IMG/VR virus record: IMGVR_UViG_3300025121_000011
Location: 186,001-250,000 of that record
Direction: 5' to 3' (one strand)
Length of the DNA: 64,000 nt
How positions within the stretch are numbered: the first letter of the stretch is position 1; each line of letters begins with the position of its first letter. Below the pieces are notes generated by a model, which was given only the letters and a program-made list of their open reading frames with translations, searched no databases and had not been told where the DNA came from. The translations under genes were made by a program, and so were the position numbers. Shown here in pieces: positions 3,723-53,111 of the stretch.

Positions 3723-5867
3723 ATGGAAAATGAAAAATACCTCAGAGCTGTTTTGACTGGCGTAGCGGGTCAGGATGGTTCGTATCTGTCAGAACATTTA
3801 CTTGGTTTAAATTATACGGTAATAGGAATATCTAGGCGAAAATCTGTAGAACAGGGTCTTACAAATATACAACATCTTATATCCAATCCGAATTTTCATC
3901 TTTTGATTGGCGATATTACAGACTCTACATTTATTAGTCGCACATTGCATGATTGGCAGCCGCATGAATATTATGGATTAGCCGCAATGTCTAATGTGGG
4001 GCAATCTTTTAAAGAACCTCTTAATACATTTAGAACTAATGCAGAAGCTGTAATTATGCAATTAGAAATGATTAGACAATTATCACCATCTACTAGATAT
4101 TATCAAGCATCTACTTCGGAACTTTTTGGAGGCATCAATTGCCCCGAAGAGGGTTATGATGAATCATCTCCAATTTATCCTAGATCTCCATATGCAGTTG
4201 CCAAAGCTGCGGCTTATTATGCTGTAATTAATTACAGAGAAGCCTATGGGATTCATGCTTCCAACGGAATATTATTCAACCACAGTTGTATTGCTCCAAA
4301 TACGGCGGTAATAATAAAAAGAAATAAAAATATAGAAATAGTAAATCCAACCGATATTCTTCGGCCTTCTGTTTTAGAGGTCGGTCTTAATTTAAGTGAT
4401 GAAAATATAGATATATGGGATGGAGAAGAATGGGTTAAATTAAAATCCATAACTGCAAAACCCGTTAAGGATAGTGATTTAGATATGGTTGGGCAAATTA
4501 CAAATACGAGAAGTGGTGTTGTCTTTACGACAAAAAATCATAATTTACTTGATAAAAACAGTAAAAAGGTTCGGGCAGATTCTGTAGGTATTGGAACCAA
4601 TCTTTTGCATGGTAAATACCCAATGATAAATAGAAATTTAAATGAATTTAGTGTTGATGAGGCGGAATTAATCGGATTAATTGTTGGAGACGGTTGGATT
4701 CATAAAGAAAAGACGATATGTCATATAGGAAATAATTCTGACGATATAGTTGAAAGAATAAGGGTACTATGGTCACAGATAAATAATTCAACAATCACCA
4801 TAGGAAAGTTTTATAACAAAAAGGGGTCTTTTGGAAAAAGTAGAAATATAAAAATTAATAACTTCTCAGATTGGCATTATGCGGGATATCTCAGAGATAT
4901 GATATATAATTTTGATAATAAGAAAAAAATACCAATTGGTATTTTAAATTCCTCTGTTGATGTTCAATTAGCTTTTCTCAATGGATATAATATGGCAGAT
5001 GGATTGAAAAAGAATAAATGCAGATATAAGTTTAAAAATTTCAAGACCAACAGTCAGGAATTAGCTGCGGGGCTTCTTTTGTTAATTCATAATACAACAA
5101 AGCAGACTTACAATCTAAATATAGAATATAGAAATAATAAATATTATTACAGTATTAATTTATTATCAGATAAGCAAACCTCAAATGAAAAACAATCAGA
5201 AATAAAGCACCTGCTATCTCTCGGCCTTTCTCAAAGAGAAATAAACAGAAGAACTGGAATATCAAGAGTTTTTATTAGAAAGGTTCAAAATAATGAACAA
5301 ATAATAACCAAACATTATAGATTTTTAAACAGAGCAGAAGTTAAAAAGATTTTAAATACAAAATATAATTGTGTTTATGATATCGAAACAGAATCTGGAA
5401 AGTTTATGGCAGGAGCGGGAAGCATTGTAATCGCAAACTCTCCTCGCAGGGGATTTGACTTCGCAACCAGAAAGATAACCAGTGGAATAGCTAAAATCAA
5501 ATTAGGCTTAGAGCCTAATCTTAAAATGGGAAACCTTGATGTGTTTAGAGACGAGGGGCATGTCAAGGATCATATGAAAGCAATGCATTTAATATTGCAA
5601 CAAGAGACTCCAGATGATTATGTAATATGTACAGAAACAGGTGCAACGATTAAAGAAATGTTAGAATATGTTTGTGAATTAGCAGAATTGGATTTTGAGA
5701 ATGTATATGAAATGGACCAAGATTTTATGCGCCCATCAGATGTTAAATTTTTAAAAGGAAACGCAACAAAGGCTAGGTTAGTTTTGGGATGGGCACCAGA
5801 ATATACTTGGAAAGAAACGTTAAAAGAAATGTATGAAAATGATCTTAAAATATTGCAGAAATTATAG
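3723..5867 (+). CDS. gmd: GDP-mannose 4,6-dehydratase, intein-containing
   Basis: TGVAGQDGSYL, YQASTSELFG, PRSPYAVAK, GILFNH...SPRRG split by an intein, FATRKIT, LKMGNLD, FMRPSDV. Confidence 0.92.
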   Translation: MENEKYLRAVLTGVAGQDGSYLSEHLLGLNYTVIGISRRKSVEQGLTNIQHLISNPNFHLLIGDITDSTFISRTLHDWQPHEYYGLAAMSNVGQSFKEPLNTFRTNAEAVIMQLEMIRQLSPSTRYYQASTSELFGGINCPEEGYDESSPIYPRSPYAVAKAAAYYAVINYREAYGIHASNGILFNHSCIAPNTAVIIKRNKNIEIVNPTDILRPSVLEVGLNLSDENIDIWDGEEWVKLKSITAKPVKDSDLDMVGQITNTRSGVVFTTKNHNLLDKNSKKVRADSVGIGTNLLHGKYPMINRNLNEFSVDEAELIGLIVGDGWIHKEKTICHIGNNSDDIVERIRVLWSQINNSTITIGKFYNKKGSFGKSRNIKINNFSDWHYAGYLRDMIYNFDNKKKIPIGILNSSVDVQLAFLNGYNMADGLKKNKCRYKFKNFKTNSQELAAGLLLLIHNTTKQTYNLNIEYRNNKYYYSINLLSDKQTSNEKQSEIKHLLSLGLSQREINRRTGISRVFIRKVQNNEQIITKHYRFLNRAEVKKILNTKYNCVYDIETESGKFMAGAGSIVIANSPRRGFDFATRKITSGIAKIKLGLEPNLKMGNLDVFRDEGHVKDHMKAMHLILQQETPDDYVICTETGATIKEMLEYVCELAELDFENVYEMDQDFMRPSDVKFLKGNATKARLVLGWAPEYTWKETLKEMYENDLKILQKL
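4287..5438 (+). mobile_element. Intein (384 aa) with LAGLIDADG endonuclease in gmd
   Basis: Begins CIAPNT, ends VYDIETESGKFMAGAGSIVIAN followed by Ser; LIGLIVGDG and FLNGYNMADG motifs; removal restores FNHS|SPRRG. Confidence 0.9.
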
Positions 5868-5877
5868 AACGATAAGC

Positions 5878-5884
5878 TATTAAT
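5878..5884 (+). promoter_or_regulatory. TAYTAAT element (putative late promoter)
   Basis: TATTAAT 25 nt upstream of ATG 5910; the same heptamer lies 17-30 nt upstream of several other operon starts. Confidence 0.45.
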
Positions 5885-5909
5885 TCAGTTAATTAAGATA
5901 GGGGATGCG

Positions 5910-6659
5910 ATGTATCAATTAACTGAATTATTAAATATTCTGAAGAGATCACACTCTGATTCTAGTGAGATTCGAAATATAATTCATAAGATAGCAACTC
6001 GACCATTACCTATACCATCCAAAGAGGAACTTCAGCCAACAGCAGATAAGATAATAGAATATATAGAGCATCAATTAAAAACTGTTCCAATATATTCTAG
6101 CATAATGCGCAATACTCAAAAGAAGCATTATAAAAGTTCTATTCCAATTGAAACATTAAAATTAAAAAATGTTAAAGATGATGAAATTAAAATAGATATT
6201 TTTTGGGCTTATACATCTGAAGACATGAAGGGATTTTTGGAAGAAATTTCTGATGAATATAAAAAAATATATATCTTTATAAGATCTGATATCCCAAAAA
6301 TAGAAGCCTTTAAAGATTTACGTAAACATATTATTGTTTCATTGGAACACGAAATAACTCATGCACTTGATATTCTTTCGCTATCAGATGAATATCTTTC
6401 TCTGGATGGTAAGCAAGATTTTATAGCATATGTAAATGATTCTGGAGAGATCAAAGCATTTATACGTACATTATATTCCGAAATACAAGAAGAGGTAAGA
6501 GAAAGAATAGATAATGGTGGATCATTGGGTTCGGCCATTATGCATGCGTTAAGTACAAACCTTGACTGGAAGCAAATTAAAAAATATGTGTCTGATAAAA
6601 ACAAAGCAGTTTTGTTAAAAGGATTAGTAACAGCCTTTCAAGATGAAGGTTTAATGTAG
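5910..6659 (+). CDS. HExxH zincin-like metallopeptidase-domain protein with loose match to the shared leader
   Basis: SLEHEITHALD followed by YVNDSGEIKAF (downstream Glu ligand); N-terminus QLTELLNILKRSH. Confidence 0.6.
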   Translation: MYQLTELLNILKRSHSDSSEIRNIIHKIATRPLPIPSKEELQPTADKIIEYIEHQLKTVPIYSSIMRNTQKKHYKSSIPIETLKLKNVKDDEIKIDIFWAYTSEDMKGFLEEISDEYKKIYIFIRSDIPKIEAFKDLRKHIIVSLEHEITHALDILSLSDEYLSLDGKQDFIAYVNDSGEIKAFIRTLYSEIQEEVRERIDNGGSLGSAIMHALSTNLDWKQIKKYVSDKNKAVLLKGLVTAFQDEGLM

Positions 6660-6668
6660 GAGATAATT

Positions 6669-6863
6669 ATGTCATTTAAAAAAACTGGAGAGATTAAAGT
6701 TTATCGAAAAGATAAAGAAGGCATATCTAAGAAAGCCGGAAAAGAGAGTCCTGCGAGATATACCGTAGATGATTTGGTAGATGAATCTGAAGCTGGATAC
6801 GATCCTTATGAGGAAGAAGATTGGGATCTGGAAATATCACCAAAAGAACAAGCAGAATCATAA
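6669..6863 (+). CDS. Small hypothetical protein (basic N-terminus, acidic C-terminus)
   Basis: 64-aa ORF with a GGAG RBS, in operon context. Confidence 0.55.
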   Translation: MSFKKTGEIKVYRKDKEGISKKAGKESPARYTVDDLVDESEAGYDPYEEEDWDLEISPKEQAES

Positions 6864-6900
6864 TTTCATCCAACCTTTAAGAATGTGATTGGAGAATATA

Positions 6901-7311
6901 ATGTGGGATAAAATAAAAATACTTTCTAATGTTTTAAAACGTTTTGGATTAGCCAAAGATGTAGATGCACTATTAGAATCTGAAGGATTTTCTGAAGATA
7001 TACATATTTTATTTTTAAAACAGGGAGGAAAAAAAGATCATCTTTTATCCTTATTTCATCATTTACATCATTCAATAAGTGATAGAAAAATAGAACACGA
7101 AGTTCATCATTGTGGTGGGAAACATAAAGGTAAAGATATAAATTATACTATATCTCATTGTTCTCATAATAAACATAGAATAGATAAAGAAGATGCCATC
7201 GGACATGGCACAACACACGGAGATGATCTTTTAGCAGTTAAAATTCATTTTACGGAAAAATGTTCTGATGGTGGTTGGCACATAGAAAGCGGAAAAATAA
7301 AAGATGATTAA
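6901..7311 (+). CDS. His-rich hypothetical protein with the shared leader motif
   Basis: ATG 6901 behind GGAG; KIKILSNVLKRFGLAKDVDALL; many His and several Cys in the C-terminal half. Confidence 0.6.
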   Translation: MWDKIKILSNVLKRFGLAKDVDALLESEGFSEDIHILFLKQGGKKDHLLSLFHHLHHSISDRKIEHEVHHCGGKHKGKDINYTISHCSHNKHRIDKEDAIGHGTTHGDDLLAVKIHFTEKCSDGGWHIESGKIKDD

Positions 7312-8080
7312 TGAATATGAAGCTATTTGCAGTAAAATAAACAACTATGATTGGCATCCAAGTTATGATTCTTTTGAGAATAAAGTATATTCATTAAATA
7401 TTGCTATTACTCAAGATCTTGATAAAATTGTTAATAAAATAACTGTAAATAAACAAGAAATTCATTTAGCTTATTCGGGTGGAGTAGATTCTACAATTAT
7501 TTTATTTAAGCTTTTAAAATATAATATTCCAATTTTTGCTCATACAATTGCTTCGAGTGAAAATCATTTTGATTTTATATATGCAAAAAAAGTGTTATCT
7601 TCTTCTAATATATTATCAAGCGTTAAACATATACCTCATATTTTATCTGTGAAAGAAGATGATCTTATAGAGTCTAACAATATTTTAGAATCAAATGATA
7701 AAAGACCAGATAATTATTATTATTTAATGCGATCTATATTGCATTATACTCAATCAGTTATTAATTGCGATATAATAGATGAACTACTTGGTGGATATTA
7801 TTTGCATTATGGACCGAATATTCCAATGTTTTATGATTGTTTAAATAAGTTAATAAAAGATCATTTATATATTTTAAATAAGATTTCTACACATTTTAAT
7901 ATAGAAGTGTTTCTTCCATATGGTGGAGATAATTTTATGCATAAATGTGAATCTTTTTCTTTTGATGAATTGGTCGGAATAAATCAGCGAAAAAAGCCTG
8001 TATATGAAATCGCAAAATTATGTAATATTCCAGAATATATAATGGAGCGCAAAAAAATGGGATTAGTTTCTGCTTTATAA
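7304..8080 (+). CDS. Asparagine synthetase C-terminal-like PP-loop ATPase (no glutaminase domain)
   Basis: LAYSGGVDST PP-loop, DELLGGY, RKKPVYE, ERKKMG. Confidence 0.7.
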   Translation: MINEYEAICSKINNYDWHPSYDSFENKVYSLNIAITQDLDKIVNKITVNKQEIHLAYSGGVDSTIILFKLLKYNIPIFAHTIASSENHFDFIYAKKVLSSSNILSSVKHIPHILSVKEDDLIESNNILESNDKRPDNYYYLMRSILHYTQSVINCDIIDELLGGYYLHYGPNIPMFYDCLNKLIKDHLYILNKISTHFNIEVFLPYGGDNFMHKCESFSFDELVGINQRKKPVYEIAKLCNIPEYIMERKKMGLVSAL

Positions 8081-8099
8081 AATAGAGGTATATAAGTTT

Positions 8100-8606
8100 A
8101 TGTTAAATAAACTACAAAATTTAGAATATGCTCTTTTGTCTTATGGTCTTGCAAAAGAGGCACGTTTTGTGAATTTATTAAATAGAAATATATCCACCGC
8201 TTCTTCTATTGCCGATTCAACGGAGCGTGCAATTCACACGCCATTTAATTCAGAAAAACTAATAGCAACAGATGGCATAAGAATACCTTTTGGTGATTTT
8301 AATGAACCATGGGAAGTGTTTATATTAGAAGGCGACAACTATTCTGGAGTCAGAGCGGGCAGAATACTATTGGGATATCAAGATGAACCAGCTGGAGGAA
8401 TCAAGTGGTTTGAGGAGGATGGTAGACCAGTAATAACTCATTATTTTCTTGATGAAGATTTAAGAGGCAAAAAAGTTATTTCTCAATTGCTAGAAATTTA
8501 TAAAAAGTATGTTTCGGATCGTATTATTATAACTGGTCCATTTTCAGAGCAGGGAAAAGCGGTGGCGGATAAAAAGGCAGATGAAATTGTAGATTATAAA
8601 TATTAA
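8100..8606 (+). CDS. GNAT-like acetyltransferase-domain protein with the shared leader motif
   Basis: ITHYFLDEDLRGKKVISQLL resembles GNAT motif A; N-terminus KLQNLEYALLSYGLAKEARFVNLL. Confidence 0.5.
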   Translation: MLNKLQNLEYALLSYGLAKEARFVNLLNRNISTASSIADSTERAIHTPFNSEKLIATDGIRIPFGDFNEPWEVFILEGDNYSGVRAGRILLGYQDEPAGGIKWFEEDGRPVITHYFLDEDLRGKKVISQLLEIYKKYVSDRIIITGPFSEQGKAVADKKADEIVDYKY

Positions 8607-8615
8607 TGAGGTCAA

Positions 8616-9563
8616 ATGAAGATTGCCATTTTAACATTTAATTATGGATATGCTGGGAAAGTTGTTAATGGTCCTGGCATGTGCTTGGCTAACTTTGTCA
8701 AATTTTTAAACCAAGTAATACCCAGTATAGAAGTAGAAGTTTTTACGCAACTAACACCAATCAAACCGATACCAAATGTGCATTCTATAAGTAATAATAA
8801 GCTCTTATCTAAGACTATTAAATATGTAGACCTCGTACATCATTGGAGCGGAATTACACCGGAGTTAGTTCGAGCAGTTATATATGCAAATCAATTGCAA
8901 AAGAAAGTCATCATCGGTCCAAATGTTTTAGATACTGTAGAGTTTGAAAAAGAAAAAGGATTTCTAAGGAAAGTAGCTTTTGAAAAAATATTAACAGCAA
9001 ATAATCGATTATCTTTTAAGATTTCCAAAGAACATAATATTCCGATAAATAAAGTAATTTCATTTCAAGTTGGACCAGATTTAGACTTATGGACTCCCTC
9101 GGCAGAAAGAGATGGCACAATTCTCTGGAAGGGAAATAGTAAACAATTTGTAAAAGATGTAGATTTTGCTAAAAGAATAGAAAGTAAAATAGGAAATAAA
9201 TATACTTTTAAATTTATTGGATATCCTAATCCTTATGATTATTATAATCATATTGCCGAAGCTCGATTATCTAAGATGACTATAACAACATCACTTAGTG
9301 AAACCATGAATCTTTCTCAGTTAGAATCTTGGAGTTCTGGAATACCATCAGTAAGTCATCCAAAAATTTATATGCATGGAAAAAATTATCAAACAGGCAT
9401 TATAACTAATAAAACTATTGATGAATATATAGATGCAATTAATGAAATTATGCAAAATGAACAACTCTATCAATATTTATCTTTAGGTTGTAGACAATAT
9501 ATTTTAGATGAATTTTCTGCAAGTAAAACTGTAGAGAAGTATTTACAAATTATTAGCAATTAA
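8616..9563 (+). CDS. Glycosyltransferase, GT-B fold (GT4-like)
   Basis: VIIGPN, GPDLDLWTP, TSLSETMNLSQLESWSSGIPSVS (Ex7E-type motif), C-terminal EFSASKTVEKY. Confidence 0.75.
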   Translation: MKIAILTFNYGYAGKVVNGPGMCLANFVKFLNQVIPSIEVEVFTQLTPIKPIPNVHSISNNKLLSKTIKYVDLVHHWSGITPELVRAVIYANQLQKKVIIGPNVLDTVEFEKEKGFLRKVAFEKILTANNRLSFKISKEHNIPINKVISFQVGPDLDLWTPSAERDGTILWKGNSKQFVKDVDFAKRIESKIGNKYTFKFIGYPNPYDYYNHIAEARLSKMTITTSLSETMNLSQLESWSSGIPSVSHPKIYMHGKNYQTGIITNKTIDEYIDAINEIMQNEQLYQYLSLGCRQYILDEFSASKTVEKYLQIISN

Positions 9564-11599
9564 TGAGAAAGCCAATGAAAAATATTTTTGGAAAATTGAC
9601 TAAATTAGCAAATGTTTTGTATAAACTTGGTCAAAAAAAAGAAAGTATATATGTTATACTTTTAAGATCATCATTTTTTAAAAGTGCCGTTACTTTATAT
9701 CATGGTGGTTTAGTAGAAAATAAAGATAGTATACAACATAGTGGATTAATACCACAAGTTGGTCCATGGGTAGAAGAGGTTTTAAGTGGTGCAACTGATC
9801 AAGATATTGATTTTGATGAACATGGTTTAGTTTTTGCAGCAGATAAGCATAGATTTGATATGGCGGTATATGCTATGTTATGGCATATAGCAAATAAACT
9901 TGGTAAAAGTGCAAATAATATTACACCAGAAGAAATCATTAAATATGGATTATTAGTTATAATTAAAGAAGGTGAATCTTCATTTGTAAAGCGACCAAAA
10001 GATGATATGCAATGGTATAAAATGCAAGAGGAAATTAGTTATGATACAGGCAACCCCTTGTGGGCAGTTGAACCAGAAGATTGGTTCTCTACGGAAGGAT
10101 CTGATGCGGATATTTTATTAACTGGAAATAAATTATTAAGTTATATCACAAGAAGAGGAGCCTATCCACTCAAGGGATCTATGACTGCCGGTTATGATAA
10201 ATGGTTGCGACAAGAATATATTAAACAAAAAAAGAAGGATCCTCAGCAACATTTGTTTCCTGAATCCACAGAAGATTTACAAAAGAGATTATCTGATATG
10301 TCAGAATCAGAAATCAAAAAAGAGTTGGATGCAATCAAAGCATCTATAAAGTGTACATCAGCCTATGATACTCCATTTTTAAAACAACTCGATGATTCTG
10401 GGCGTTATGATATAGAGTTAGATCCTGATAATACTATTGAACACTTGGAAACCTATCGCTATAAGCCAAAAGGTATTGAACACTGGAATGAAGATAGTAG
10501 GCATCTTACAGATCCCAATTCAGGAAAAACCTTTAAAAGCCGTCCCATTAGATGGGATCCTGAAATTACAGATGTAACAACAATTGAAGATGAGTGGGGT
10601 AAAGATTTTAAGGATCAGTTAAAAGAGGGCTGGTTAGACAAATTGCCTCAAAATCCAAATTTAATATATCGTGGAATGTCATGGGAGGAATATCAATTTA
10701 TACTTAAAACAAATAATATTCAATCATTGGGAGATTATAATTTAGGTGATGAACAAATTGGATTAACTTATTTTAGTACAGATCCAAATAGTGCAGCTTA
10801 TTATGCTCATAGTTTTGCCCCAACTCAATATAAAGCTACACCAGAAAAACCCGCCTATGTAGTTGCTGTTCCCAAAAGAGATGGAGTACCTGTAGCTGGA
10901 ACTGGAGAGCATGAGGTTGGTGTGCGAGGACCGATACCCGCTAATGAAGTTGTTGAAGTTTGGGAAGGGATGCCGTATTATATGACCGCCGGTGGTTCAT
11001 TGGATATTATTAATGACTGGGGCGGTCGTAGAGAAGGGTCTAGAGTATCTCCATTGATAAGTGTGGCATGGAGAAAAATAATTCCTTCTTTAAAAACTAA
11101 AGCTTCTATTCTAAAAACTTTTAATAAACATGAAATAGAAGATGAAGATTTATTAGAATCTAAATCCACAGAAACATCTTCAAAAACTATATTAGAGAGA
11201 GCCATAGAGTATTTTGGACTAACTTATAGCGCAAGAGCAGCTGGTTACATTCTGCCGGATGGCAGGCTTTTGGATTTCTCGGAAAAGACTGGAGAAAGAA
11301 TCTCAGATCATCGAGAGGTAGGATTTTTAGTAGAGGAATATGGACCTTTTGAATATGAATCTGATGCTATGGATAGATTTATGAAGGAAACAGGTTGTAT
11401 AAGATTAGGAGTTTATAATAGATATATGCAGATAGATGCTCAAACAGTACCAACTGAAAAACAAATGAAGACAATACAGTCTATTATAAAAAGATATAAT
11501 ATAGAAGGAGCATCTGTTATAAAGCCCGGCAGAATTTCAGATGAAGAAATAGATTTTCCAACGGCTAATCAAATTTTTAAAATTTTAACAAGTAATTAA
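9563..11599 (+). CDS. Multidomain protein: shared leader, two ADP-ribosyltransferase-like domains and a C-terminal GYILPDG domain
   Basis: TLYHGG...GLIP...VFAA; LIYRGMS...YFSTD...AYYA...EHEVGVRGPIP (R-S-E-type ART pattern); AGYILPDGRLLDFS...DHREV. Confidence 0.55.
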   Translation: MRKPMKNIFGKLTKLANVLYKLGQKKESIYVILLRSSFFKSAVTLYHGGLVENKDSIQHSGLIPQVGPWVEEVLSGATDQDIDFDEHGLVFAADKHRFDMAVYAMLWHIANKLGKSANNITPEEIIKYGLLVIIKEGESSFVKRPKDDMQWYKMQEEISYDTGNPLWAVEPEDWFSTEGSDADILLTGNKLLSYITRRGAYPLKGSMTAGYDKWLRQEYIKQKKKDPQQHLFPESTEDLQKRLSDMSESEIKKELDAIKASIKCTSAYDTPFLKQLDDSGRYDIELDPDNTIEHLETYRYKPKGIEHWNEDSRHLTDPNSGKTFKSRPIRWDPEITDVTTIEDEWGKDFKDQLKEGWLDKLPQNPNLIYRGMSWEEYQFILKTNNIQSLGDYNLGDEQIGLTYFSTDPNSAAYYAHSFAPTQYKATPEKPAYVVAVPKRDGVPVAGTGEHEVGVRGPIPANEVVEVWEGMPYYMTAGGSLDIINDWGGRREGSRVSPLISVAWRKIIPSLKTKASILKTFNKHEIEDEDLLESKSTETSSKTILERAIEYFGLTYSARAAGYILPDGRLLDFSEKTGERISDHREVGFLVEEYGPFEYESDAMDRFMKETGCIRLGVYNRYMQIDAQTVPTEKQMKTIQSIIKRYNIEGASVIKPGRISDEEIDFPTANQIFKILTSN

Positions 11600-11609
11600 T
11601 TGAGGATAA

Positions 11610-12359
11610 ATGAAGGTTGATATAATAATACCAGCTTATAATCCGGGTTCATACTTAAAAGATGCTTTAGATAGCTGTTTGGCTCAAACATATAAAAATT
11701 ATCAGATTTATGTAATTGATGATTGCTCTACAGAAAATATTAAAAGTGTAACAAACGACTACCCTAATATTTGTTATATTAGAACGCCACATCATCTAGG
11801 ACCGGGAGGTACCAGAAATTATGGTATCGCCAATGGAAGTGGAGAATTACTTAGCTTCTTAGATGCAGATGATATGTGGGAACCAAAGAAGCTAGAATGG
11901 AGCGTAACGGAGTTTGAAAAAGATAAATCTATAGCGATGACCTGTGGGAATTATCGTAGACTAGAAGATAGAAAAAGACTTTGTAATCCATTTTATCGTC
12001 ATCCGCCCATTATAACCTGGCAGAATTTGATGAGGGTGAACCTTGTTGCATGTGGAAGTGTTACTCTGCTTAGAAGTATATTTGAAAAAATAGGAGGATT
12101 TTCAGAAAAAATCTGGATTTGTGAAGATTATAACTTATGGCTAAAAGTTTCTGAACAATATAAAATTAAGTATGTTGATCAGGTATTATATCTCTACAGT
12201 GTAATTAAAGATGGAAAATCTTTAACGAATCAGCAATCACTTCAGATTGCTCATAAAGGTGTTGGTGATATAATTAGAAGAGAGTCAATGGAGAGAGTAA
12301 ATGCACTTAAGCAACTTGAAGCCAAATCAAACAATTTTAATAAAAACATATTTACATGA
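11610..12359 (+). CDS. Glycosyltransferase family 2 (GT-A)
   Basis: IIIPAYN, VIDDCST, GGTRNYG, FLDADD (DxD), EDYNLWLKV. Confidence 0.9.
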   Translation: MKVDIIIPAYNPGSYLKDALDSCLAQTYKNYQIYVIDDCSTENIKSVTNDYPNICYIRTPHHLGPGGTRNYGIANGSGELLSFLDADDMWEPKKLEWSVTEFEKDKSIAMTCGNYRRLEDRKRLCNPFYRHPPIITWQNLMRVNLVACGSVTLLRSIFEKIGGFSEKIWICEDYNLWLKVSEQYKIKYVDQVLYLYSVIKDGKSLTNQQSLQIAHKGVGDIIRRESMERVNALKQLEAKSNNFNKNIFT

Positions 12360-13344
12360 GTCTGGTCTTTTTTATCTTGCAAAAAGTCTTGGGGATAGAT
12401 TAAAATCTGAGGGTCATCATGTTATTTATGTTCCTAAATCTAAATATTTACTTCAAGGTTCTATATTTCAAAGAGATTATTTAACTCCCACTGATAATAA
12501 ATTATTAGATAATGAAACAGTTCATTGGTTTGATAAACGGTATCCAATAGAAAATCAAATATCTGAGATGATTATTAAATATAAAGTTGATCTTTTGATT
12601 TCATTTGAAACTTTAATGGAGAAATCTCAGTGGGTTTCACGAGTAAAGCAAAGAACTGGGATCAAAGTTATTGACATTCCAATGGTTGAATGGGTAAATG
12701 ATAAACTTTTAAATGGTCGCTCTTATTCTATTTTTGATGAGATTTGGTGTTTAACCGAACAATGTTATTCATATTTTAAAATTTATCCAGATGCAAAAAA
12801 AATTATTTGGAATTGGGTTGATCCGTTTTTGTTTCATACAGTAGAAAAGCAAGATGGTATTGTGCGTTTTTATCACGCCGGAAGCTTAAATTCGGAATAT
12901 TCTAGTAAAAATACGGAATTAGTTATTCAAGCTTTTGACCTCTTTTTAAGAGAGAGTCCTGATGCTATATTAATTGTTTCGGGAAATATAACAGATAAGA
13001 CAAGTCTTCGACTTATTAAAAAGCATGAAAATATTTTTATTACAAATGGTGTTTTAGATAGAAAAGATATTGCAAAATTATATCAAGACAGCCACTGTGT
13101 AATAGCACCCTCCTCAAGAGAGGGTTTGGGCTTGAGTCTTTATGAGGCCAAAGCATGTGACTGTTTGGTAATAACAACAGATATGCCACCAATGAACGAA
13201 TGTGATACTAAATACTTATGTAAAGTTAAAAATCTTAAAAGAGATCATAAATTAACACCACTTGGAATTATAGATGTTAAAGAAATATATGAGCAAATTA
13301 AACAAGTTTATGGAGATATAAATGTCAGATGTAAAGATAAGTAA
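12301..13344 (+). CDS. Glycosyltransferase, GT-B fold (GT4-like)
   Basis: FYHAG, KNTELVIQAF, VIAPSSREGLGLSLYEAKACDCLVITTDMPPMNE. Confidence 0.82.
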   Translation: MHLSNLKPNQTILIKTYLHESGLFYLAKSLGDRLKSEGHHVIYVPKSKYLLQGSIFQRDYLTPTDNKLLDNETVHWFDKRYPIENQISEMIIKYKVDLLISFETLMEKSQWVSRVKQRTGIKVIDIPMVEWVNDKLLNGRSYSIFDEIWCLTEQCYSYFKIYPDAKKIIWNWVDPFLFHTVEKQDGIVRFYHAGSLNSEYSSKNTELVIQAFDLFLRESPDAILIVSGNITDKTSLRLIKKHENIFITNGVLDRKDIAKLYQDSHCVIAPSSREGLGLSLYEAKACDCLVITTDMPPMNECDTKYLCKVKNLKRDHKLTPLGIIDVKEIYEQIKQVYGDINVRCKDK

Positions 13345-14773
13345 GGAAATACTTAATAGCTCTAAAACTACGGCAATAATTACTAAAGAAAATGAAGAAC
13401 TTTTAGCGGCTTTTATGAGCGCAGAAAAAATTTCAAAGGAGAAGTCACAAATGGATCAAGAAACATTAGATAAACTTAAGGCTAGAAAATTAGAGAAGCA
13501 AGCTTTAGAAGTAAAGTCAGAAGAAGTAACTTCAGAAGGAGAGGTAGATATGATGGATGTAATAACTAATCAAGAAGTTAGTATTAATATTGGGGTGGTT
13601 GGTATTGGTCAAGCTGGTTCTAGAATTGCCGAGGAGTTTCATAAGTGCGGATATGATGTTGGCGTTATCAACACTTCTGCTCAAGATCTAAAATTCATTG
13701 ATGTGATGCCACATCAAAAGTTATTATTGGAAGGTAGTTTGGGTGGAACTGGAAAAAATCTGGTATTGGGTCGAGAAATTTTTGAAGTAAATGAATCTTT
13801 GGTTAGAAGTTTTATAGAAGATATAGCAGAAGGAAATACTATGATCTTTTTAGCTGTTTCTGGAGGTGGTGGCACGGGTGCTTCATCAGTATCTTCTGTT
13901 ATTCCAATGATGTTTGAATTGGGTATTCCGGTTGGTGTAATTTATGTATTGCCTAAAGCTACAGAGGACGCCCAATCTAAGAAGAATGCTGTAGAAACTC
14001 TTGCGAAGTTGGCTCGTCAAACTACTGATAATTTAATCTCATCTTTAATTGTAGTGGATAATGCAAGAATAGAAAATATTTACGGCGGATTAGGTCAAGC
14101 TCAATTCTGGAAAACAGCCAATGCTGCTATTGTAGAACCATTACATTTGTTTAATACCAAAACAGCTCAGCCATCTAGATTTACTTCTTTAGATCCTTCA
14201 GATTTTGGAAGAATCATCTCTTGTGGCGATTGCTCAATATATGGTGTTATTGAAGTAGAAAATTATCTTGATGAAACAGCATTAGCAGAAGCAGTAATGG
14301 ATAGTTTAAGTGGAAACATGCTAGCTGAAGGGTTTGATTTAAAACAAACTAGAGCTGGTGGAGTAATTATTGTAGGTTCAGAATCTGCTTTGGAACAACT
14401 TCCATCTGTAAATATTGATTATTGTTTTCATATAATTTCAGATGAAACAAATGGTGCAAATATTTTCCAAGGAATTTATTCTGATAATAAGATGGCTGAA
14501 GATAAAATAAAAATATATAGTTGGTTTTCGGGATTAGGTCTTCCTCAGGATAGAATAGAAAATTTAAGAAAAGAAAGCAAATTAGCATCTTCCGTGGCCG
14601 CTGAAAAAGAGAAGGCTAGGAATTCTCAAATGACGTTAGATTTAGAAGAAGATAAAATAGCTAGCGCTGCTGATAAGATCCATAATAAAATAAGAGAAAA
14701 AAATTCTGGATTTAATCGGTTACAGGGCGGCGCTCGAAAGTCTATTCTTGACAAACGTAAGCATAGCAGATAA
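13322..14773 (+). CDS. Tubulin/FtsZ-family GTPase (PhuZ/TubZ-like) with a charged N-terminal extension
   Basis: VGIGQAGSRIA, VINTS, GGTGKN, SGGGGTGASS tubulin signature, IVVDN, T7-loop-like SLDPSDF; charged C-terminal tail. Confidence 0.88.
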   Translation: MSDVKISKEILNSSKTTAIITKENEELLAAFMSAEKISKEKSQMDQETLDKLKARKLEKQALEVKSEEVTSEGEVDMMDVITNQEVSINIGVVGIGQAGSRIAEEFHKCGYDVGVINTSAQDLKFIDVMPHQKLLLEGSLGGTGKNLVLGREIFEVNESLVRSFIEDIAEGNTMIFLAVSGGGGTGASSVSSVIPMMFELGIPVGVIYVLPKATEDAQSKKNAVETLAKLARQTTDNLISSLIVVDNARIENIYGGLGQAQFWKTANAAIVEPLHLFNTKTAQPSRFTSLDPSDFGRIISCGDCSIYGVIEVENYLDETALAEAVMDSLSGNMLAEGFDLKQTRAGGVIIVGSESALEQLPSVNIDYCFHIISDETNGANIFQGIYSDNKMAEDKIKIYSWFSGLGLPQDRIENLRKESKLASSVAAEKEKARNSQMTLDLEEDKIASAADKIHNKIREKNSGFNRLQGGARKSILDKRKHSR

Positions 14774-14811: not shown

Positions 14812-17800
14812 ATGATGGAATCATATTCAAATCTCACTAAGAGTTTGTTCCATTTGGAGAATAAGATGGATAGAGAAGAGAGGCAAAAGAAACTCATAAA
14901 TATTTTAAAAAGTTCTATTGATAATAATCTCAATCTTCCAGAAGACCAAATTAGAGAAAGTTTTAGTAATACTGCTTTTGCCTTTCCCTATAAATTAGAC
15001 ACCTTAGAAAATCCCGGTTTTATTGATGAATATATAGTTACTTCAGAAGAGATTGAGAGTTATATTGAGCAATATCAAAAAGTTGCTAATATTCTTGAAA
15101 ATGGACTTGCTAAATTTTTAAGATTGCAAGAAAAAGTTAAAGCTTTTATGGCCACAAATTCTTTAACAAAAGATATAGAACCAGAGAGACTTTTCAAAAG
15201 AATTTATAGATTAGATAATTATGCTAAAAATTTATTTATGATGTTTATGCTGCCGACAGGAGGTTCTTATGGATATAATAAATATCTTGAGCGAAGTATA
15301 AATAAATCATCTACTTCCCGCGAGGATTATCTTCAAAAAATAGAGCGCATAGAAATGGATGCCATTGAAATAGTTAGGAGTATTCCAAGTGATATAGATG
15401 ACTTAGTTAAAATATATGATTTAAATTCTGAAGATGAATTAGCAGAGGCAATATTTTATTTAAGTAAATCTCCTAAACTTATTGGTGTAAATAGATATAT
15501 AAATCAGAATACTCCAGAATCTTTTTCTCCTATTGCATTTGAAATTCATCCACAACAGATGTTAGAAGCTGGTAGAAAGTATAAGACATTATCACTTTAT
15601 GGGTATGAACCACAAGGACCACAAGGATTTCCAGAATTCCAGTCACATACTAAAAAAGAAAAGCAATATAAATATAATCCAGATTTAGAATTACCAGAAT
15701 CTGATTATAGAGGTAAGGGATTTTTAATAAATAAATTTATTGATGAACAAATTTCTAATTACTTTGAAAGATATTATGAAAAAACAGATAAAGAGATTAT
15801 TAATGCCACTAGAGATGAATTGCAACAAAGATTAGTTAAATCTCTAAATGAAAGAGTAAGTAGTCTTGAGGAAATGATTCAGGTGTATGGTTTTCCTGAA
15901 TTTCTTATTAAAGATATAAAATCAAGAATTTATTCTAATGATTTTGGAAAACTTATGTCTTCTGGAATTAATACTGAAAAAGAATATAGTGACAATTCTA
16001 ATGAGATTTTAATACATAGCCTTATAACGAATGGAAATTTTTCAGCTCTTCGGTATATAATTAAATTATCAGAATCAAAAAATGATAATCAAGCAAAGGA
16101 TTTTTTTAAAAAAGCCATAAAAGAACAAGTATCTGATATAGATTTTCGATCTGAAGAAAATGCTAAAGTTGATATTTTAGATATCATAACAGAAATTGAT
16201 AGAAAATATGGTGAGAAAATTAGACAACAGGGCTTGCAAGCTGTTTTCCCCTATGCTTGGAAAGCTATATTTCAAATACCAACTATGTATGGGCTAAATT
16301 TTGATATAGATACATATGCAGTTAGCAGTAGAAGCGGTATTTTGGGTATTATTTCAAAAATATATAAAGAAAAAATAAGAACAGCTTTAGAGGAGCAAGC
16401 CTATGGAAATGGTAAAAAATTAAAAGATACTTCAACTTTTAAAGAAATAATATTTCTTAGCAGAATTAAACACCTAGGATTTTCTGGTTACAGGAAAATG
16501 AATCAATACATGGATGAGGAAAAAGAAAATTACGAGCCATTTGATAAAGTTTCCGAAGAACCAAATCCAAAAGAGCGGGCGCGCATACTTAATACATTAA
16601 AAGATACAGTAAAAGATCCTGAAAATATTTCAGAAATATATGAAGCATACGATGAATATATTAAAAGATATAAAGATTTATCAGTTCCAGGATTGCAAGA
16701 AAAGAAAGACATTTGGAATCATTTCTTATTAAAAGTAATTGGGAAATTATACCGTCAGGAAGAAGCTTATATAACCGGAAAGACAAATCAATTATTTGAT
16801 AAATTTCCAGATATCATTGTGCCAGATCTCCCAGCTATATCTTGGGATAAATTTTTAATTTCTTCGGCATCATTTGGATGCGCATCTACTCCGATTACAA
16901 TTCTTAAAACATTACAAGATGGTATAAAAACGGGATTAATTCCACTTTTTGTAAAATTATCATCTGTTGATGAATTTAACTCCATTGAAAGAATGGAAGG
17001 TTTTTTATTAAAATTAGTTCAAATATATAATCTTTATAAAAATAACCGAGACATTTTTAATTTAAGACTCGTACAACCTTTTCCAGATTTATATAAAAAA
17101 ATTACCGGAACAAAAGAAGAGCGAATAGAGAAAATTTTACAAATTGCCAATTTATTAGATAATTATCAATTTAAAGAAGAAATTGTTGCATCAAAATATA
17201 TTGATAAAATTAATCTTGATATTATTAAAAAAGCAATAAAAACATATGCAGAATATAAAAGAGCTATTAAATCTATTGAAACAGAAAATAAAGACAGATC
17301 AAGTGATGAAAATGAAGAAGAGGGCGAGTGGGTACATGATGTATGGGTTCCACATGAGTCAAGCGAGTCAAGCAATTTAAAGAATACTGATTTTATAAAT
17401 GTATTAATTAAAAATATACAAGATATTAGAGAAAAAACAAAATCATCAGAAGATATTTTTCCGAAGGATATGGAAAACATATTACTATCTTTGCCAGCAG
17501 ATATTAGTTTGGATAAGTTTATAGATTATTTTGAAATTAATATTGGAGAATTATCAGGATCTCAAGCTCAATTGGCAAGGGCAAAACTTGCTAGATTATC
17601 ATATGGCCTATCCATTTATGGGCAGATTTCAACTGTGATGGAATATTATAATGAAGCTGAGAAAAAAAATTCTCATTTATTTGATGCAGAATTTAGTGGG
17701 AAAAACTTTAGATTTCGTGTTTTAAGGGATCTGGATCCATATCATTTCCAGGTTGGAGCTGACACTGATTGTTGTCAAATGGTTGGCGGAGCGGGTGAAC

Positions 17801-18429
17801 AAGCTGCTGTCGATTCTTTTGTAAATAGTTTAGCGGGAGTAATTGTTTTAGAGGTTATGATTGATGGAGAATGGCAACTTGTATCTCAATCTTACTTCCA
17901 TTATGTTCCAAGGCAAAATATTTTTATTCTTGATAATATTGAAGCCGGAAAATGGTCTGAAAAGAATTCAACTTTAAAAAGTATAACTGGTTATAATTTT
18001 CCTGAAATTTATGCATTATTAGGGCAGCATTTAAAAGAAAAAGGATATCAAGATGTTCTGGTTGGAATAAATTATACAAAAGTTATTACAAGATCTGAAT
18101 TTAAAAGAGATAAGAGAGATACGGATCTACGAAGATTTAAAGTAGATGATCCATATACAGATTATGAACCAGAAGACTCTATTTCGCTTTCTAATCCTAA
18201 ATTTAAAATTGTACAAAGTAAGATAAAGAATTTTATTATAGATTGGGAAATTAATAAAACAGCGCAAATCAGTCGAGAACTTATACCTTGTTTATTCCCA
18301 AGTCAAAGAATTCAAAAAATTACGCAAATAAAAATTACACCACTTAAGAAGGCTCTTTTGTCTCTTGGGCTAAAGGCTGAGGTGCGGCAAATTAACAAAC
18401 TAATTGGTCTTTCACTATCTTCTAAATAA
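14812..18429 (+). CDS. Large (1205 aa) hypothetical protein; C-terminal GNAT/PcfJ-like domain and a C-terminal copy of the shared leader motif
   Basis: Mostly helical; VGADTDCCQMVGG...SQSYFHY...ILDNIEAG domain; ends KITPLKKALLSLGLKAEVRQINKL. Confidence 0.5.
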   Translation: MMESYSNLTKSLFHLENKMDREERQKKLINILKSSIDNNLNLPEDQIRESFSNTAFAFPYKLDTLENPGFIDEYIVTSEEIESYIEQYQKVANILENGLAKFLRLQEKVKAFMATNSLTKDIEPERLFKRIYRLDNYAKNLFMMFMLPTGGSYGYNKYLERSINKSSTSREDYLQKIERIEMDAIEIVRSIPSDIDDLVKIYDLNSEDELAEAIFYLSKSPKLIGVNRYINQNTPESFSPIAFEIHPQQMLEAGRKYKTLSLYGYEPQGPQGFPEFQSHTKKEKQYKYNPDLELPESDYRGKGFLINKFIDEQISNYFERYYEKTDKEIINATRDELQQRLVKSLNERVSSLEEMIQVYGFPEFLIKDIKSRIYSNDFGKLMSSGINTEKEYSDNSNEILIHSLITNGNFSALRYIIKLSESKNDNQAKDFFKKAIKEQVSDIDFRSEENAKVDILDIITEIDRKYGEKIRQQGLQAVFPYAWKAIFQIPTMYGLNFDIDTYAVSSRSGILGIISKIYKEKIRTALEEQAYGNGKKLKDTSTFKEIIFLSRIKHLGFSGYRKMNQYMDEEKENYEPFDKVSEEPNPKERARILNTLKDTVKDPENISEIYEAYDEYIKRYKDLSVPGLQEKKDIWNHFLLKVIGKLYRQEEAYITGKTNQLFDKFPDIIVPDLPAISWDKFLISSASFGCASTPITILKTLQDGIKTGLIPLFVKLSSVDEFNSIERMEGFLLKLVQIYNLYKNNRDIFNLRLVQPFPDLYKKITGTKEERIEKILQIANLLDNYQFKEEIVASKYIDKINLDIIKKAIKTYAEYKRAIKSIETENKDRSSDENEEEGEWVHDVWVPHESSESSNLKNTDFINVLIKNIQDIREKTKSSEDIFPKDMENILLSLPADISLDKFIDYFEINIGELSGSQAQLARAKLARLSYGLSIYGQISTVMEYYNEAEKKNSHLFDAEFSGKNFRFRVLRDLDPYHFQVGADTDCCQMVGGAGEQAAVDSFVNSLAGVIVLEVMIDGEWQLVSQSYFHYVPRQNIFILDNIEAGKWSEKNSTLKSITGYNFPEIYALLGQHLKEKGYQDVLVGINYTKVITRSEFKRDKRDTDLRRFKVDDPYTDYEPEDSISLSNPKFKIVQSKIKNFIIDWEINKTAQISRELIPCLFPSQRIQKITQIKITPLKKALLSLGLKAEVRQINKLIGLSLSSK

Positions 18430-45299: not shown

Positions 45300-46118
45300 A
45301 TGGATAAACTTGCTGACTTATGTGAATATTTAAAAGAACATAAATATTATGAAGAAGCAGAATTCTTATTAAAATATATTAAGAAAGCAGGTTTATCTTT
45401 TGATATTATTAAAGAAGCAAAAAAATATCAGATTAAAAGTGGAGACACACCTTACACTTTATCCAAGGGAAATTATCAATATCAAAAAGCAATAGAAAAT
45501 GCTAATAAACAGATTAAAGATTGGTCAAAAATTCAAATAGATCAAGTAATTGAATTGCCTCCGATTGCTAAATCAGAAAATCCAAATAATGATGTAGTAT
45601 ATACTATTAAAGCAATAGCTTTAATTAAAAAAGTAGAAACAGAAGTTTTGTATACTTATCCAGACTTTGGATATAGAGCTTATGGATATGGTCACAGATA
45701 TGGTAAAATGGATGCTGGAGAAATAACTAGGTACAAACAAACTTTAACTAAACGAAATAAAATAGGTACTTCTGGATTTTTGACTGCTCGGGAATGTAAG
45801 TTTATTTTTGGAAAGAATTTTAAACAAATAGACTCTGGAACGGCAAATAAACTATTGCTTCAAGATATAAATATAGCATTGGGATGCATCAAGCGAAACA
45901 TAAAACATAAGCTTAACCAAAATCAAGTGGATGCATTAATTAGTATTATTTATAATACAGGTTGTGGAACTTTTGCTCAGTCTTCTTTATTAGATACTAT
46001 TAATGCGGGAAAATTAAACACAGCTGCTAAACTAATTCCTACAAGTTTTATTTTATCTGAAACTCATAAAGAAAGAAGAAAGTTTGAAGCAGAGTTATTT
46101 AGAACGGAACTTATATGA
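45300..46118 (+). CDS. LysM domain plus GH24 (T4-type) lysozyme with the shared leader motif
   Basis: YQIKSGDTPYTL...IQIDQVIELP (LysM); KVE...YPD...YGYGH, LNQNQVDALISIIYNTG, RRKFEAELF. Confidence 0.75.
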   Translation: MDKLADLCEYLKEHKYYEEAEFLLKYIKKAGLSFDIIKEAKKYQIKSGDTPYTLSKGNYQYQKAIENANKQIKDWSKIQIDQVIELPPIAKSENPNNDVVYTIKAIALIKKVETEVLYTYPDFGYRAYGYGHRYGKMDAGEITRYKQTLTKRNKIGTSGFLTARECKFIFGKNFKQIDSGTANKLLLQDINIALGCIKRNIKHKLNQNQVDALISIIYNTGCGTFAQSSLLDTINAGKLNTAAKLIPTSFILSETHKERRKFEAELFRTELI

Positions 46119-52874: not shown

Positions 52875-53111
52875 ATGATTAATAGATTAATTAAAATTGC
52901 AGATTTTTTAGACCGTTCTGGGCGCCAAGAAGATGCGGATTTTATGACTGGACTTCTCATAGCTTATAAAAAGGCGCAATCCGGTATAGATGGTATTAAT
53001 ATAGAATCAGATTACATACCTGAAAGTTTAGAAATTCCAGATGATGAATACGATCTTTTAATGGATGTATTTTCTTCTTTAGGTAAAAGTCTAAATAAGG
53101 ATGTTAAATAA
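52875..53111 (+). CDS. Small protein consisting of the shared leader motif plus an acidic tail
   Basis: MINRLIKIADFLDRSGRQEDADFMTGLLIAYKKAQ. Confidence 0.6.
   Translation: MINRLIKIADFLDRSGRQEDADFMTGLLIAYKKAQSGIDGINIESDYIPESLEIPDDEYDLLMDVFSSLGKSLNKDVK

Follow-up and report, generated by a model that had tools for sequence, protein, structure and literature searches.

Of the macromolecule-modifying enzymes that large phages direct against their hosts, ADP-ribosyltransferases (ARTs) are the most common, and very few of them have known targets. Among the modifying enzymes found in polyvalent proteins they likewise rank first, and more than 40% of jumbo phages have them (PMC5512222, PMC9503650); a survey of 2017 described only ARTs of the H-Y-D type in polyvalent proteins (PMC5512222). 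Among the other described systems are T4 Alt, an R-S-E ART of the Alt/VIP2 clade that is packaged, injected and matured by the gp21 prohead protease, and TreX and TreTu (PDB 8s2m, 7zhl), which are ART toxins associated with Rhs proteins and with type VI secretion (T6SS). The protein studied here, P0001, is encoded in a window of 64,000 nucleotides that represents bases 186,001-250,000 of the complete virus record IMGVR_UViG_3300025121_000011 (335,169 bp, direct terminal repeats). The source of the record is an uncultured jumbo phage of 335 kb known from metagenomic assembly, with ~31% G+C and almost all genes on the + strand. P0001 is probably a compact three-module effector of the polyvalent type, with two different ART domains and a third, ART-associated module.

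The open reading frame (ORF) of P0001 is uninterrupted. A cluster representative, P0002, is 100% identical to P0001 with the start called at M5, and because the identical protein with the Met5 start was recorded on 11 contigs, a misassembled chimera of modules 1 to 3 is unlikely. Whole P0001 gave no usable match in Pfam, PHROGs or NCBIfam, and phmmer and profile searches of PDB sequences with whole P0001, module 2 and module 3 returned only noise. The ESM-Atlas's own model of P0001 had a predicted local distance difference test score (pLDDT) of 0.44. An exhaustive HMMER search yielded 1,459 relatives at E<=1e-3, nearly all of them via residues ~270-506, and many were located inside giant proteins of 2-4.7 k amino acids (aa). 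When isolated phages were searched by tblastn, two separate parts of P0001 were matched: aa 367-528 within the 'large polyvalent protein' (2,772 aa) of Planktothrix phage Pag-Yong1, and aa 552-643 in the interior of a >2,600-aa ORF of a Rhodobacteraceae phage. Local mapping of the relatives resolved three independent modules (residues ~38-262, 268-507 and 541-678), and the gene was divided as follows.

9563..11599, + strand: whole gene of the three-module protein P0001, single ORF, 678 aa
9563..9679, + strand: N-terminal extension, aa 1-39, two predicted helices (5-21, 25-38), pLDDT 62-82
9680..10147, + strand: module 1 core, aa 40-195, predicted H-type ART-like fold
10148..10363, + strand: C-terminal helical region of module 1, aa 196-267, conserved in the module-1 family, ending at A267-Y268 and matching generic helical hairpins only
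10364..10651, + strand: N-terminal beta-rich subdomain of module 2, aa 268-363, beginning at the conserved edge YD[TV]P.LK.L..S.RYDI
10652..11083, + strand: ART core of module 2, aa 364-507, predicted R-S-E type, with Y-R370-G, E376, S388, T402-Y-F-S405-T406-D, Y414 and G-E449-H-E451-V
11084..11182, + strand: inter-module linker, aa 508-540 (PSLKTKA, then SILKTFNKHEIEDEDLLESKSTETSS...), acidic and Ser/Thr-rich, containing A514-S515
11183..11596, + strand: module 3, aa 541-678, unnamed putative polyvalent-protein-associated domain with the motif G.T...AGYILPDG..LDFS.....R..DHR...G.IR...PT..Q

The natural termini of relatives define the same boundaries, since standalone module-1 relatives begin at query residue 38, 28 standalone module-2 relatives end exactly at residue 507 and standalone module 3 begins at residue 541. 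Therefore, the earlier domain parse, made in an original prediction that described P0001 as a double ART cut into separate effectors by a prohead protease, was correct, and its three proposed cut points (corrected here to A42/V43, A267/Y268 and A514/S515) fall at true module boundaries. Among the listed relatives, module 1 was found in five small or mid-size proteins and in the giants P0031 (two copies), P0123 and P0034. Module 2 was found in 147 of them, with the beta-rich front half (268-365) in about a third. There was no module-3 relative among the best 150 of the 1,459 HMMER matches; this module was located by a word search, together with an alignment-based scan of viral contigs, in two small proteins and at 94 viral loci. 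Each of the three modules occurs both alone and within giant polyvalent proteins, and all three are of polyvalent ancestry: in giant phage ORFs they were found alongside ART-PolyVal, ddrB-ParB, LPD3, LPD38, PBECR5, InPase and PcfJ. Polyvalent proteins carry 2 to 15 effector-type domains drawn from a shared pool and are encoded by phages or conjugative elements, and the phage gene studied here encodes three such modules.

Module 2 was modelled with AlphaFold2 from a 70-sequence alignment. The pLDDT was 94.2 and the predicted template modelling score (pTM) was 0.89, the pLDDT falling to 59 at the end of the model, near the linker of aa 508-540. Foldseek against the PDB returned nothing at E<=0.001; the best rows were ARTs with probabilities of 0.96-1.00 (TreX/TreTu, PltA, pertussis S1, CC0527, Tpt1 and a guanine-specific ART). 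ARTs also made up nearly all of the top 33 structural-neighbour rows, with scores of 9.2 for TreX (108/128 residues aligned), 8.7 for KptA, 8.3 for mouse Tpt1, 7.8 for LT-A (19% identity), 7.4 for pertussis S1 and 7.1 for PltA, CC0527 and Scabin; the split beta-sheet ART fold was the top structural neighbour class for aa 364-507. An ESM-Atlas search with module 2 returned viral clusters and DUF952.

The putative active site of module 2 is strongly conserved. R370, S388, T402, Y414 and E451 were invariant in the 70 sequences, [S/T]405 was present in 63/70 and E449 in 42/68. R370 lies on the predicted strand 105-110 of the model, strand 139-143 terminates with S405, and strand 189-193 opens with E451; the alignment with LT-A begins at residue 4, corresponding to model residue 105, which places R370 opposite R7 of LT. 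The arrangement of the R-[S/T]-E clade (Arg on strand 1, Ser/Thr on strand 2, Glu on strand 5) is thereby predicted for module 2. According to the model, module 2 consists of the beta-rich subdomain and an R-[S/T]-E (ExE) ART core, with TreX, TreTu and the cholera/pertussis group as its nearest solved neighbours. No match to PF03496 ADPrib_exo_Tox (Alt/VIP2) was found in P0001 or in the phage genome; as judged from this, module 2 is not of the Alt/VIP2 type, and it shows that polyvalent proteins commonly carry an ART family of the R-S-E type. PF24691 TreTu_C did not match P0001 and was marginal in 3/70 module-2 relatives (best E 0.064), and the predicted likeness to TreTu appears to be structural only.

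For module 1, the model was built from a 28-sequence alignment and had a pLDDT of 87.2 and a pTM of 0.71. Its Foldseek matches in the PDB were weak (E>=0.1), yet ARTs made up nearly all of the top 40 rows. In the exhaustive structure search, all matches over residues 40-195 belonged to the ART superfamily, which is the top structural neighbour class of this region; PARP13, MbcT, DarT, LT, tankyrase and PARP16 were included at lower Z, and the rest of the rows were generic helical hairpins on residues 208-270. The neighbours of module 1 in BFVD were Bacillus phage G proteins, a phage 2'-phosphotransferase, DarT and polyvalent ParB/PcfJ proteins. In the model, T44-L-Y-H47-G48 lies on strand 1 (H47 on predicted strand 45-50), F91-A-A-D94-K95 on the next core strand (F91 on predicted strand 89-93) and V-E170-P-x-D173 ahead of later strands. 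This may correspond to the H-Y-[EDQ] pattern (His of H-G-[ST] on strand 1, an aromatic residue on strand 2, an acidic residue on strand 5): H47-G48 was found in 28/28 sequences, T49 in 27/28, an aromatic residue at position 91 in 28/28 (F in 26, Y in 2) and both E170 and D173 in 27/27, and D183 was intact and (near-)invariant across the family.

Neither P0001, even at E<=10, nor any other part of the phage genome matched Pfam ART-PolyVal (PF18760, cut-off 31.2 bits). Comparison of the module-1 family with true ART-PolyVal sequences by hhalign gave probabilities of 1-8%, and its comparison with module 2 was not significant. Because sequence profiles link module 1 to neither ART-PolyVal nor module 2, it appears to be a separate divergent family with an H...[F/Y]...E pattern, placed in the superfamily by the predicted fold and the active-site pattern only. 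Single-sequence scans of viral contigs with modules 1 and 3 gave no confirmed relatives, whereas alignment-based scans succeeded and found module 1 at 26 viral loci, mostly in 190-250-aa ORFs of contigs that span 100-460 kb. In other large phages, module 1 usually stands alone as a protein of about 200-250 aa.

The earlier view that both 'ART-like' regions are ART folds was thus borne out by structure prediction together with two structure-comparison methods independent of each other. The strings on which that view was based are all present (FFKSA-VTLYHGG, IKCTSA-YDT, LIYRG with R370, FSTD with S405-T406, EHEV with E449-H-E451, and LKTKA-SIL), and the cues YHG and YRG...STD...ExE coincide with conserved catalytic-site positions of the two families.

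Module 3 had no relative in Pfam, NCBIfam or the PDB sequences, its hhalign comparison with module 2 was not significant and ESM-Atlas look-ups were uninformative. In a 53-sequence alignment, about 19 positions were invariant or near-invariant (G552, T554, A560-G-Y562, D566-G567, L570-D-F-S573, R579, D582-H-R584, G611, R614, P630-T631, Q634); the string GYILPDGRLLDFS, quoted earlier for this domain, is present at aa 561-573. Family examples are the viral loci L003-L082 (for instance, L008 aa 1001-1108 and L042 aa 1003-1137). At nearly all module-3 loci the ORF ran past both 3-kb flanks and therefore exceeded 2,000 aa, and the module can occur in two or three copies per protein. In the giant ORFs, it followed ART-PolyVal domains at a distance of 10-20 residues or preceded them by about 50; these domains scored 81-98 bits against the 31-bit cut-off of Pfam. 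In giants with relatives of the P0001 modules, Pfam also recognised ddrB-ParB, LPD3, InPase and PBECR5. Judging from these arrangements, module 3 is a widespread unnamed polyvalent-protein-associated domain that is syntactically tied to ART domains.

In 16 retrieved relatives, an H-type ART (ART-PolyVal or module 1) and module 2 were present in one chain, in either order. Therefore, the 'double ART' is a design that recurs, in agreement with the multi-ART polyvalent proteins of PMC5512222.

Other arrangements were observed among the relatives. In P0003, module 2 precedes module 1, and the tail of P0001 module 2 (AWRKIIPSLKTKA) aligns with the P0003 junction (AWKKIFPEENLSKTA, then YTLYHG). In P0034 (4,023 aa), the region of aa 3434-3851 has module 2 inserted in module 1, the order being first strand, module 2 and rest of module 1. 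A short linker motif, '[WY]DE..HPR...G.F' or 'DQPRD..GRW', was found between polyvalent modules at 53 sites in 27/158 retrieved proteins (P0019, P0072, P0083, P0091, P0107 and others); it was absent from P0001 and from the proteome of this phage, and no discussion of it was found in PMC5512222.

If P0001 is an effector of this type, each ART domain would use NAD+ to put ADP-ribose on a host macromolecule during infection, and one polypeptide would thereby deliver two different modifications. Transcription, translation or division proteins would be the likely targets, with nucleic acid as a possible one, and module 3 may be accessory to the ART cassette, either as an enzymatic unit or in target binding. 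Most likely, P0001 works as an intact multidomain enzyme or separates at its flexible linkers. The analogy with a modular, possibly virion-delivered effector, drawn in the original prediction, fits the literature on polyvalent proteins (PMC5512222, PMC9503650); the prohead-protease cleavage attached to it is unsupported.

Several observations weigh against an anti-host effector with two active ARTs. P0001 alone has G at position 49 of the H-G-T motif, where T is found in the 27 other members of the 28-sequence family, and from this residue module 1 could be weakened or inactive in P0001. The idea that one of the ART-like modules is a catalytically inactive binding or scaffold domain, module 1 being the likelier candidate, is also favoured by F instead of Y at the second triad position in most module-1 members and by the lack of a sequence-profile link from module 1 to any characterised ART. 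However, H47, G48, E170, D173 and D183 are intact and (near-)invariant, which indicates selection on the active site, and an inactive module is considered unlikely. Genes for Alt/VIP2, macro, NADAR and NadV proteins were searched for in the genome and none was detected. The remaining point is the gene context, which is one of sugar modification, with the ATG of P0001 overlapping the stop codon (TAATG) of the GT1 glycosyltransferase gene upstream.

3723..13344, + strand: tight sugar-modification cluster of GDP-mannose dehydratase, AsnB-like, GT1, double-ART, GT2 and GT1 genes

In this cluster, the GDP-mannose dehydratase, AsnB-like and GT1 genes lie on one side of the double-ART gene and the GT2 and GT1 genes on the other. 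Such a context, with three glycosyltransferases, is unlike the portal/MuF/head context of packaged polyvalent proteins. A packaging-module context (portal/terminase/MuF) would imply encapsidation; the genes adjacent here are those for glycosyltransferases, the AsnB-like protein, GDP-mannose dehydratase and TubZ, and the terminase-like ORF lies ~25 kb downstream. ADP-ribosylation and glycosylation may be functionally linked, and the translational coupling to GT1 and the embedding among sugar genes would suit phage self-modification, in which the ART modules and the flanking enzymes act on the DNA or the virion proteins of the phage or on a polymer of the cell envelope and are not anti-host effectors. 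Nevertheless, relatives of the modules occur in polyvalent proteins with no sugar context of this kind, and gene adjacency is weak evidence in the tightly packed genomes of jumbo phages, so self-modification is held to be very improbable. The more specific proposal that an ADP-ribose (or ribose-phosphate) handle is attached to virion proteins or phage DNA and the adjacent glycosyltransferases then build on it, with module 3 as a new pathway enzyme, is given slightly less credence again.

Cleavage of P0001 into its modules was considered in two forms. In the form originally predicted, P0001 would be a virion-packaged polyprotein with a leader, cut by a prohead protease after K-x-A into three effectors, as T4 Alt is cut by gp21. 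The position of the proposed sites at true module boundaries is in line with this, as are the existence of every module as an independent protein elsewhere, the ~39-aa N-terminal extension that standalone module-1 relatives do not have, and the precedents of T4 Alt and P1 DdrB as processed, packaged effectors (PMC5512222). However, K-x-A was found at only one of the three sites, FFK40-S-A42, whereas IK263-C-T-S-A267 reads K-x-x-x-A and K511-T-K513-A514 reads K-x-K-A. P0001 contains four strict K-x-A triplets (aa 14, 40, 115 and 429) against 3.0 expected, and the phage proteome contains 453 in 103,123 residues of 383 ORFs, that is, 4.39 per 1000 aa against 4.33 expected from the K and A frequencies. 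The triplet occurs within the first 60 residues in 24% of ORFs, a 1.17-fold N-terminal enrichment that ranks 100 of 373 gapped dipeptides. Because the frequency matches expectation and the N-terminal enrichment ranks so low, K-x-A is no more than a chance motif here, and a frequency control is needed before short motifs of this kind are taken for protease sites. Nor was the motif conserved at any junction in relatives: position 42 was Ala in 6/28 module-1 relatives and Glu in 14, the residues before module 2 were KCTSA, SMASDI and NAMSE in three close relatives, and in 67 fused relatives the linkers on the C-terminal side of module 2 were hypervariable, of low complexity and Pro/Ala/Gly/Thr-rich, without a fixed motif. 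Moreover, K-x-[A/S] stands ahead of TLYHG in close relatives that start at their own Met (MNKKAYTLYHGT, MIKISYTLYHGT), and therefore there is nothing there to cleave off. Recurrence, enrichment at propeptide ends and conservation in orthologues, as expected of a prohead-protease motif, were thus not found for K-x-A. A search of the complete genome with Pfam models revealed no S77 (PF03420), S78 (PF04586) or ClpP (PF00574) protease gene that could act as the cognate enzyme, although a divergent phiKZ-type protease without a Pfam model would escape such a search. In giant phages, the prohead proteases that have been mapped cleave after A-X-E (PMC10052503). The leader is not common to ORFs 45300, 5910 and 8100, and the gene does not lie in a head module and is coupled to a glycosyltransferase gene. 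Cleavage of P0001 after K-x-A is unsupported by its sequence, and the polyprotein is regarded as extremely improbable. In the other form, P0001 would be packaged or expressed whole and split at its linkers (aa 508-540 and ~262-268) by another phage or host protease, before or after delivery. The acidic, Ser/Thr-rich linker of aa 508-540 with its low model confidence, the low-complexity linkers of fused relatives and the autoproteolytic domain release proposed for polyvalent proteins (PMC5512222) are compatible with such processing. On the other hand, P0001 has no peptidase domain recognised by Pfam, no prohead protease was recognised in the genome, and the polyvalent proteins N4 vRNAP, ArdC and TraC1 are transferred unprocessed (PMC5512222); processing of this kind is judged unlikely.

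A leader shared with other ORFs of the window looked convincing in an alignment built by eye and was rejected after leave-one-out testing with hidden Markov models (HMMs), which failed for ORFs 45300, 5910 and 8100. In the same test, only ORF 52875, with 14.5 bits, and an internal segment of P0158, encoded outside the window, with 16-21 bits, were recognised, and the P0001 leader was marginal (10.2 bits against controls of up to 9.7). The K-x-A strings quoted earlier for ORFs 45300, 52875 and 5910 are present near their N-termini, and the LysM-like stretch claimed for ORF 45300 was not recovered by Pfam at E<=0.001. When the P0001 leader and linkers were compared with the phage's own proteome by blastp-short, nothing was found. 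It was also observed that a two-helix motif, 'L.RLAD.LDK.G..KEAD..D.I', forms the N-terminus of the 78-aa ORF 52875..53111 (+ strand) and occurs inside the acidic 408-aa protein P0158 (aa 242-270; L109, genome 254737..255963) as well as in relatives from other phages (P0003, P0004 and P0013), either at the N-terminus or in a linker between modules. No Pfam family matches this motif.

No paralogue of the three modules was found elsewhere in the phage genome, and scanning for sigma-70 promoters gave no information, with 64 sites found and 63 expected. The window also encodes a TubZ-like tubulin, a terminase-like gene, a tail-fibre gene, a lysozyme and several intein or homing-endonuclease insertions. 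The following genes were noted.

3723..5867, + strand: GDP-mannose 4,6-dehydratase gene with a LAGLIDADG-type intein-like insert, dehydratase matches split in two and LAGLIDADG_3 at aa 313-364
13322..14773, + strand: TubZ-like tubulin (Pfam Tubulin and TubZ-like_C), three genes 3' of the double-ART gene
14812..18429, + strand: ORF of 1,205 aa without a Pfam, PHROG or NCBIfam match
37045..39699, + strand: terminase-like ORF (phrog_35217 / phrog_17415), aa 213-661 matching intein inserts of Staphylococcus phage DNA polymerases and probably representing another intein
45300..46118, + strand: lysozyme (Pfam Phage_lysozyme at aa 175-244) with a ~170-aa N-terminal extension

As a compact polyvalent-type effector, P0001 offers a small, tractable three-module version of the unwieldy polyvalent proteins of 2,000-4,700 aa. 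It exposes three domain families that are unnamed in current curated libraries: a family of R-S-E ARTs that has over 1,400 relatives and is often fused to H-type ARTs, a distinct H-type ART-like family represented mostly by small jumbo-phage proteins, and the strongly conserved ART-adjacent module 3. If the activities of these modules and their targets were defined, thousands of proteins from phages and mobile elements would gain an annotation, and the frequent joint delivery of two ARTs of different chemistry could be explained.

Of the known systems, the Rhs/T6SS toxins TreX and TreTu resemble module 2 in predicted structure, and P0001 has no significant sequence match to them. The spacing of the NAD-contacting residues R6, E12 and S25 of TreTu (PMC9825190) is matched by R370, E376 and S388 of module 2. 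Unlike TreX and TreTu, module 2 has a canonical strand-5 Glu (E451), an ExE motif and the extra N-terminal beta subdomain, and unlike Rhs toxins, P0001 lacks an Rhs cage, and next to its gene no immunity gene was recognised. With SPN3US gp245 and the phiKZ-type processed ejection and head proteins (PMC10052503), P0001 has in common the jumbo-phage setting and a possible N-terminal propeptide; the SPN3US/phiKZ-type proteases remove N-terminal propeptides after A-X-E, whereas for P0001 no protease gene was recognised and K-x-A is statistically empty. In contrast to T4 Alt, P0001 has no PF03496 match, no gp21-type protease was found in its genome, and it carries a second ART and a third module. 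Like T4 Alt, it is a phage-encoded protein with a predicted R-S-E/ExE-type ART, and early reprogramming of host proteins is plausible.

P0001 differs from the polyvalent giants in its size of 678 aa and three modules, without an MPTase, ParB, methylase or RNA polymerase module, and in its glycosyltransferase cluster in place of a portal/MuF neighbourhood. Neither of its ARTs matches Pfam ART-PolyVal, and module 2 is of the predicted R-S-E type as opposed to the H-Y-D type of ART-PolyVal. Nevertheless, the multi-module effector architecture is common to P0001 and the polyvalent proteins with ART-PolyVal (PMC5512222), for which several ARTs per polypeptide are a known theme. An internal stretch of the 2,772-aa polyvalent protein of Pag-Yong1 is 40% identical to module 2 of P0001, and in the polyvalent giants module 3 abuts bona fide ART-PolyVal domains.

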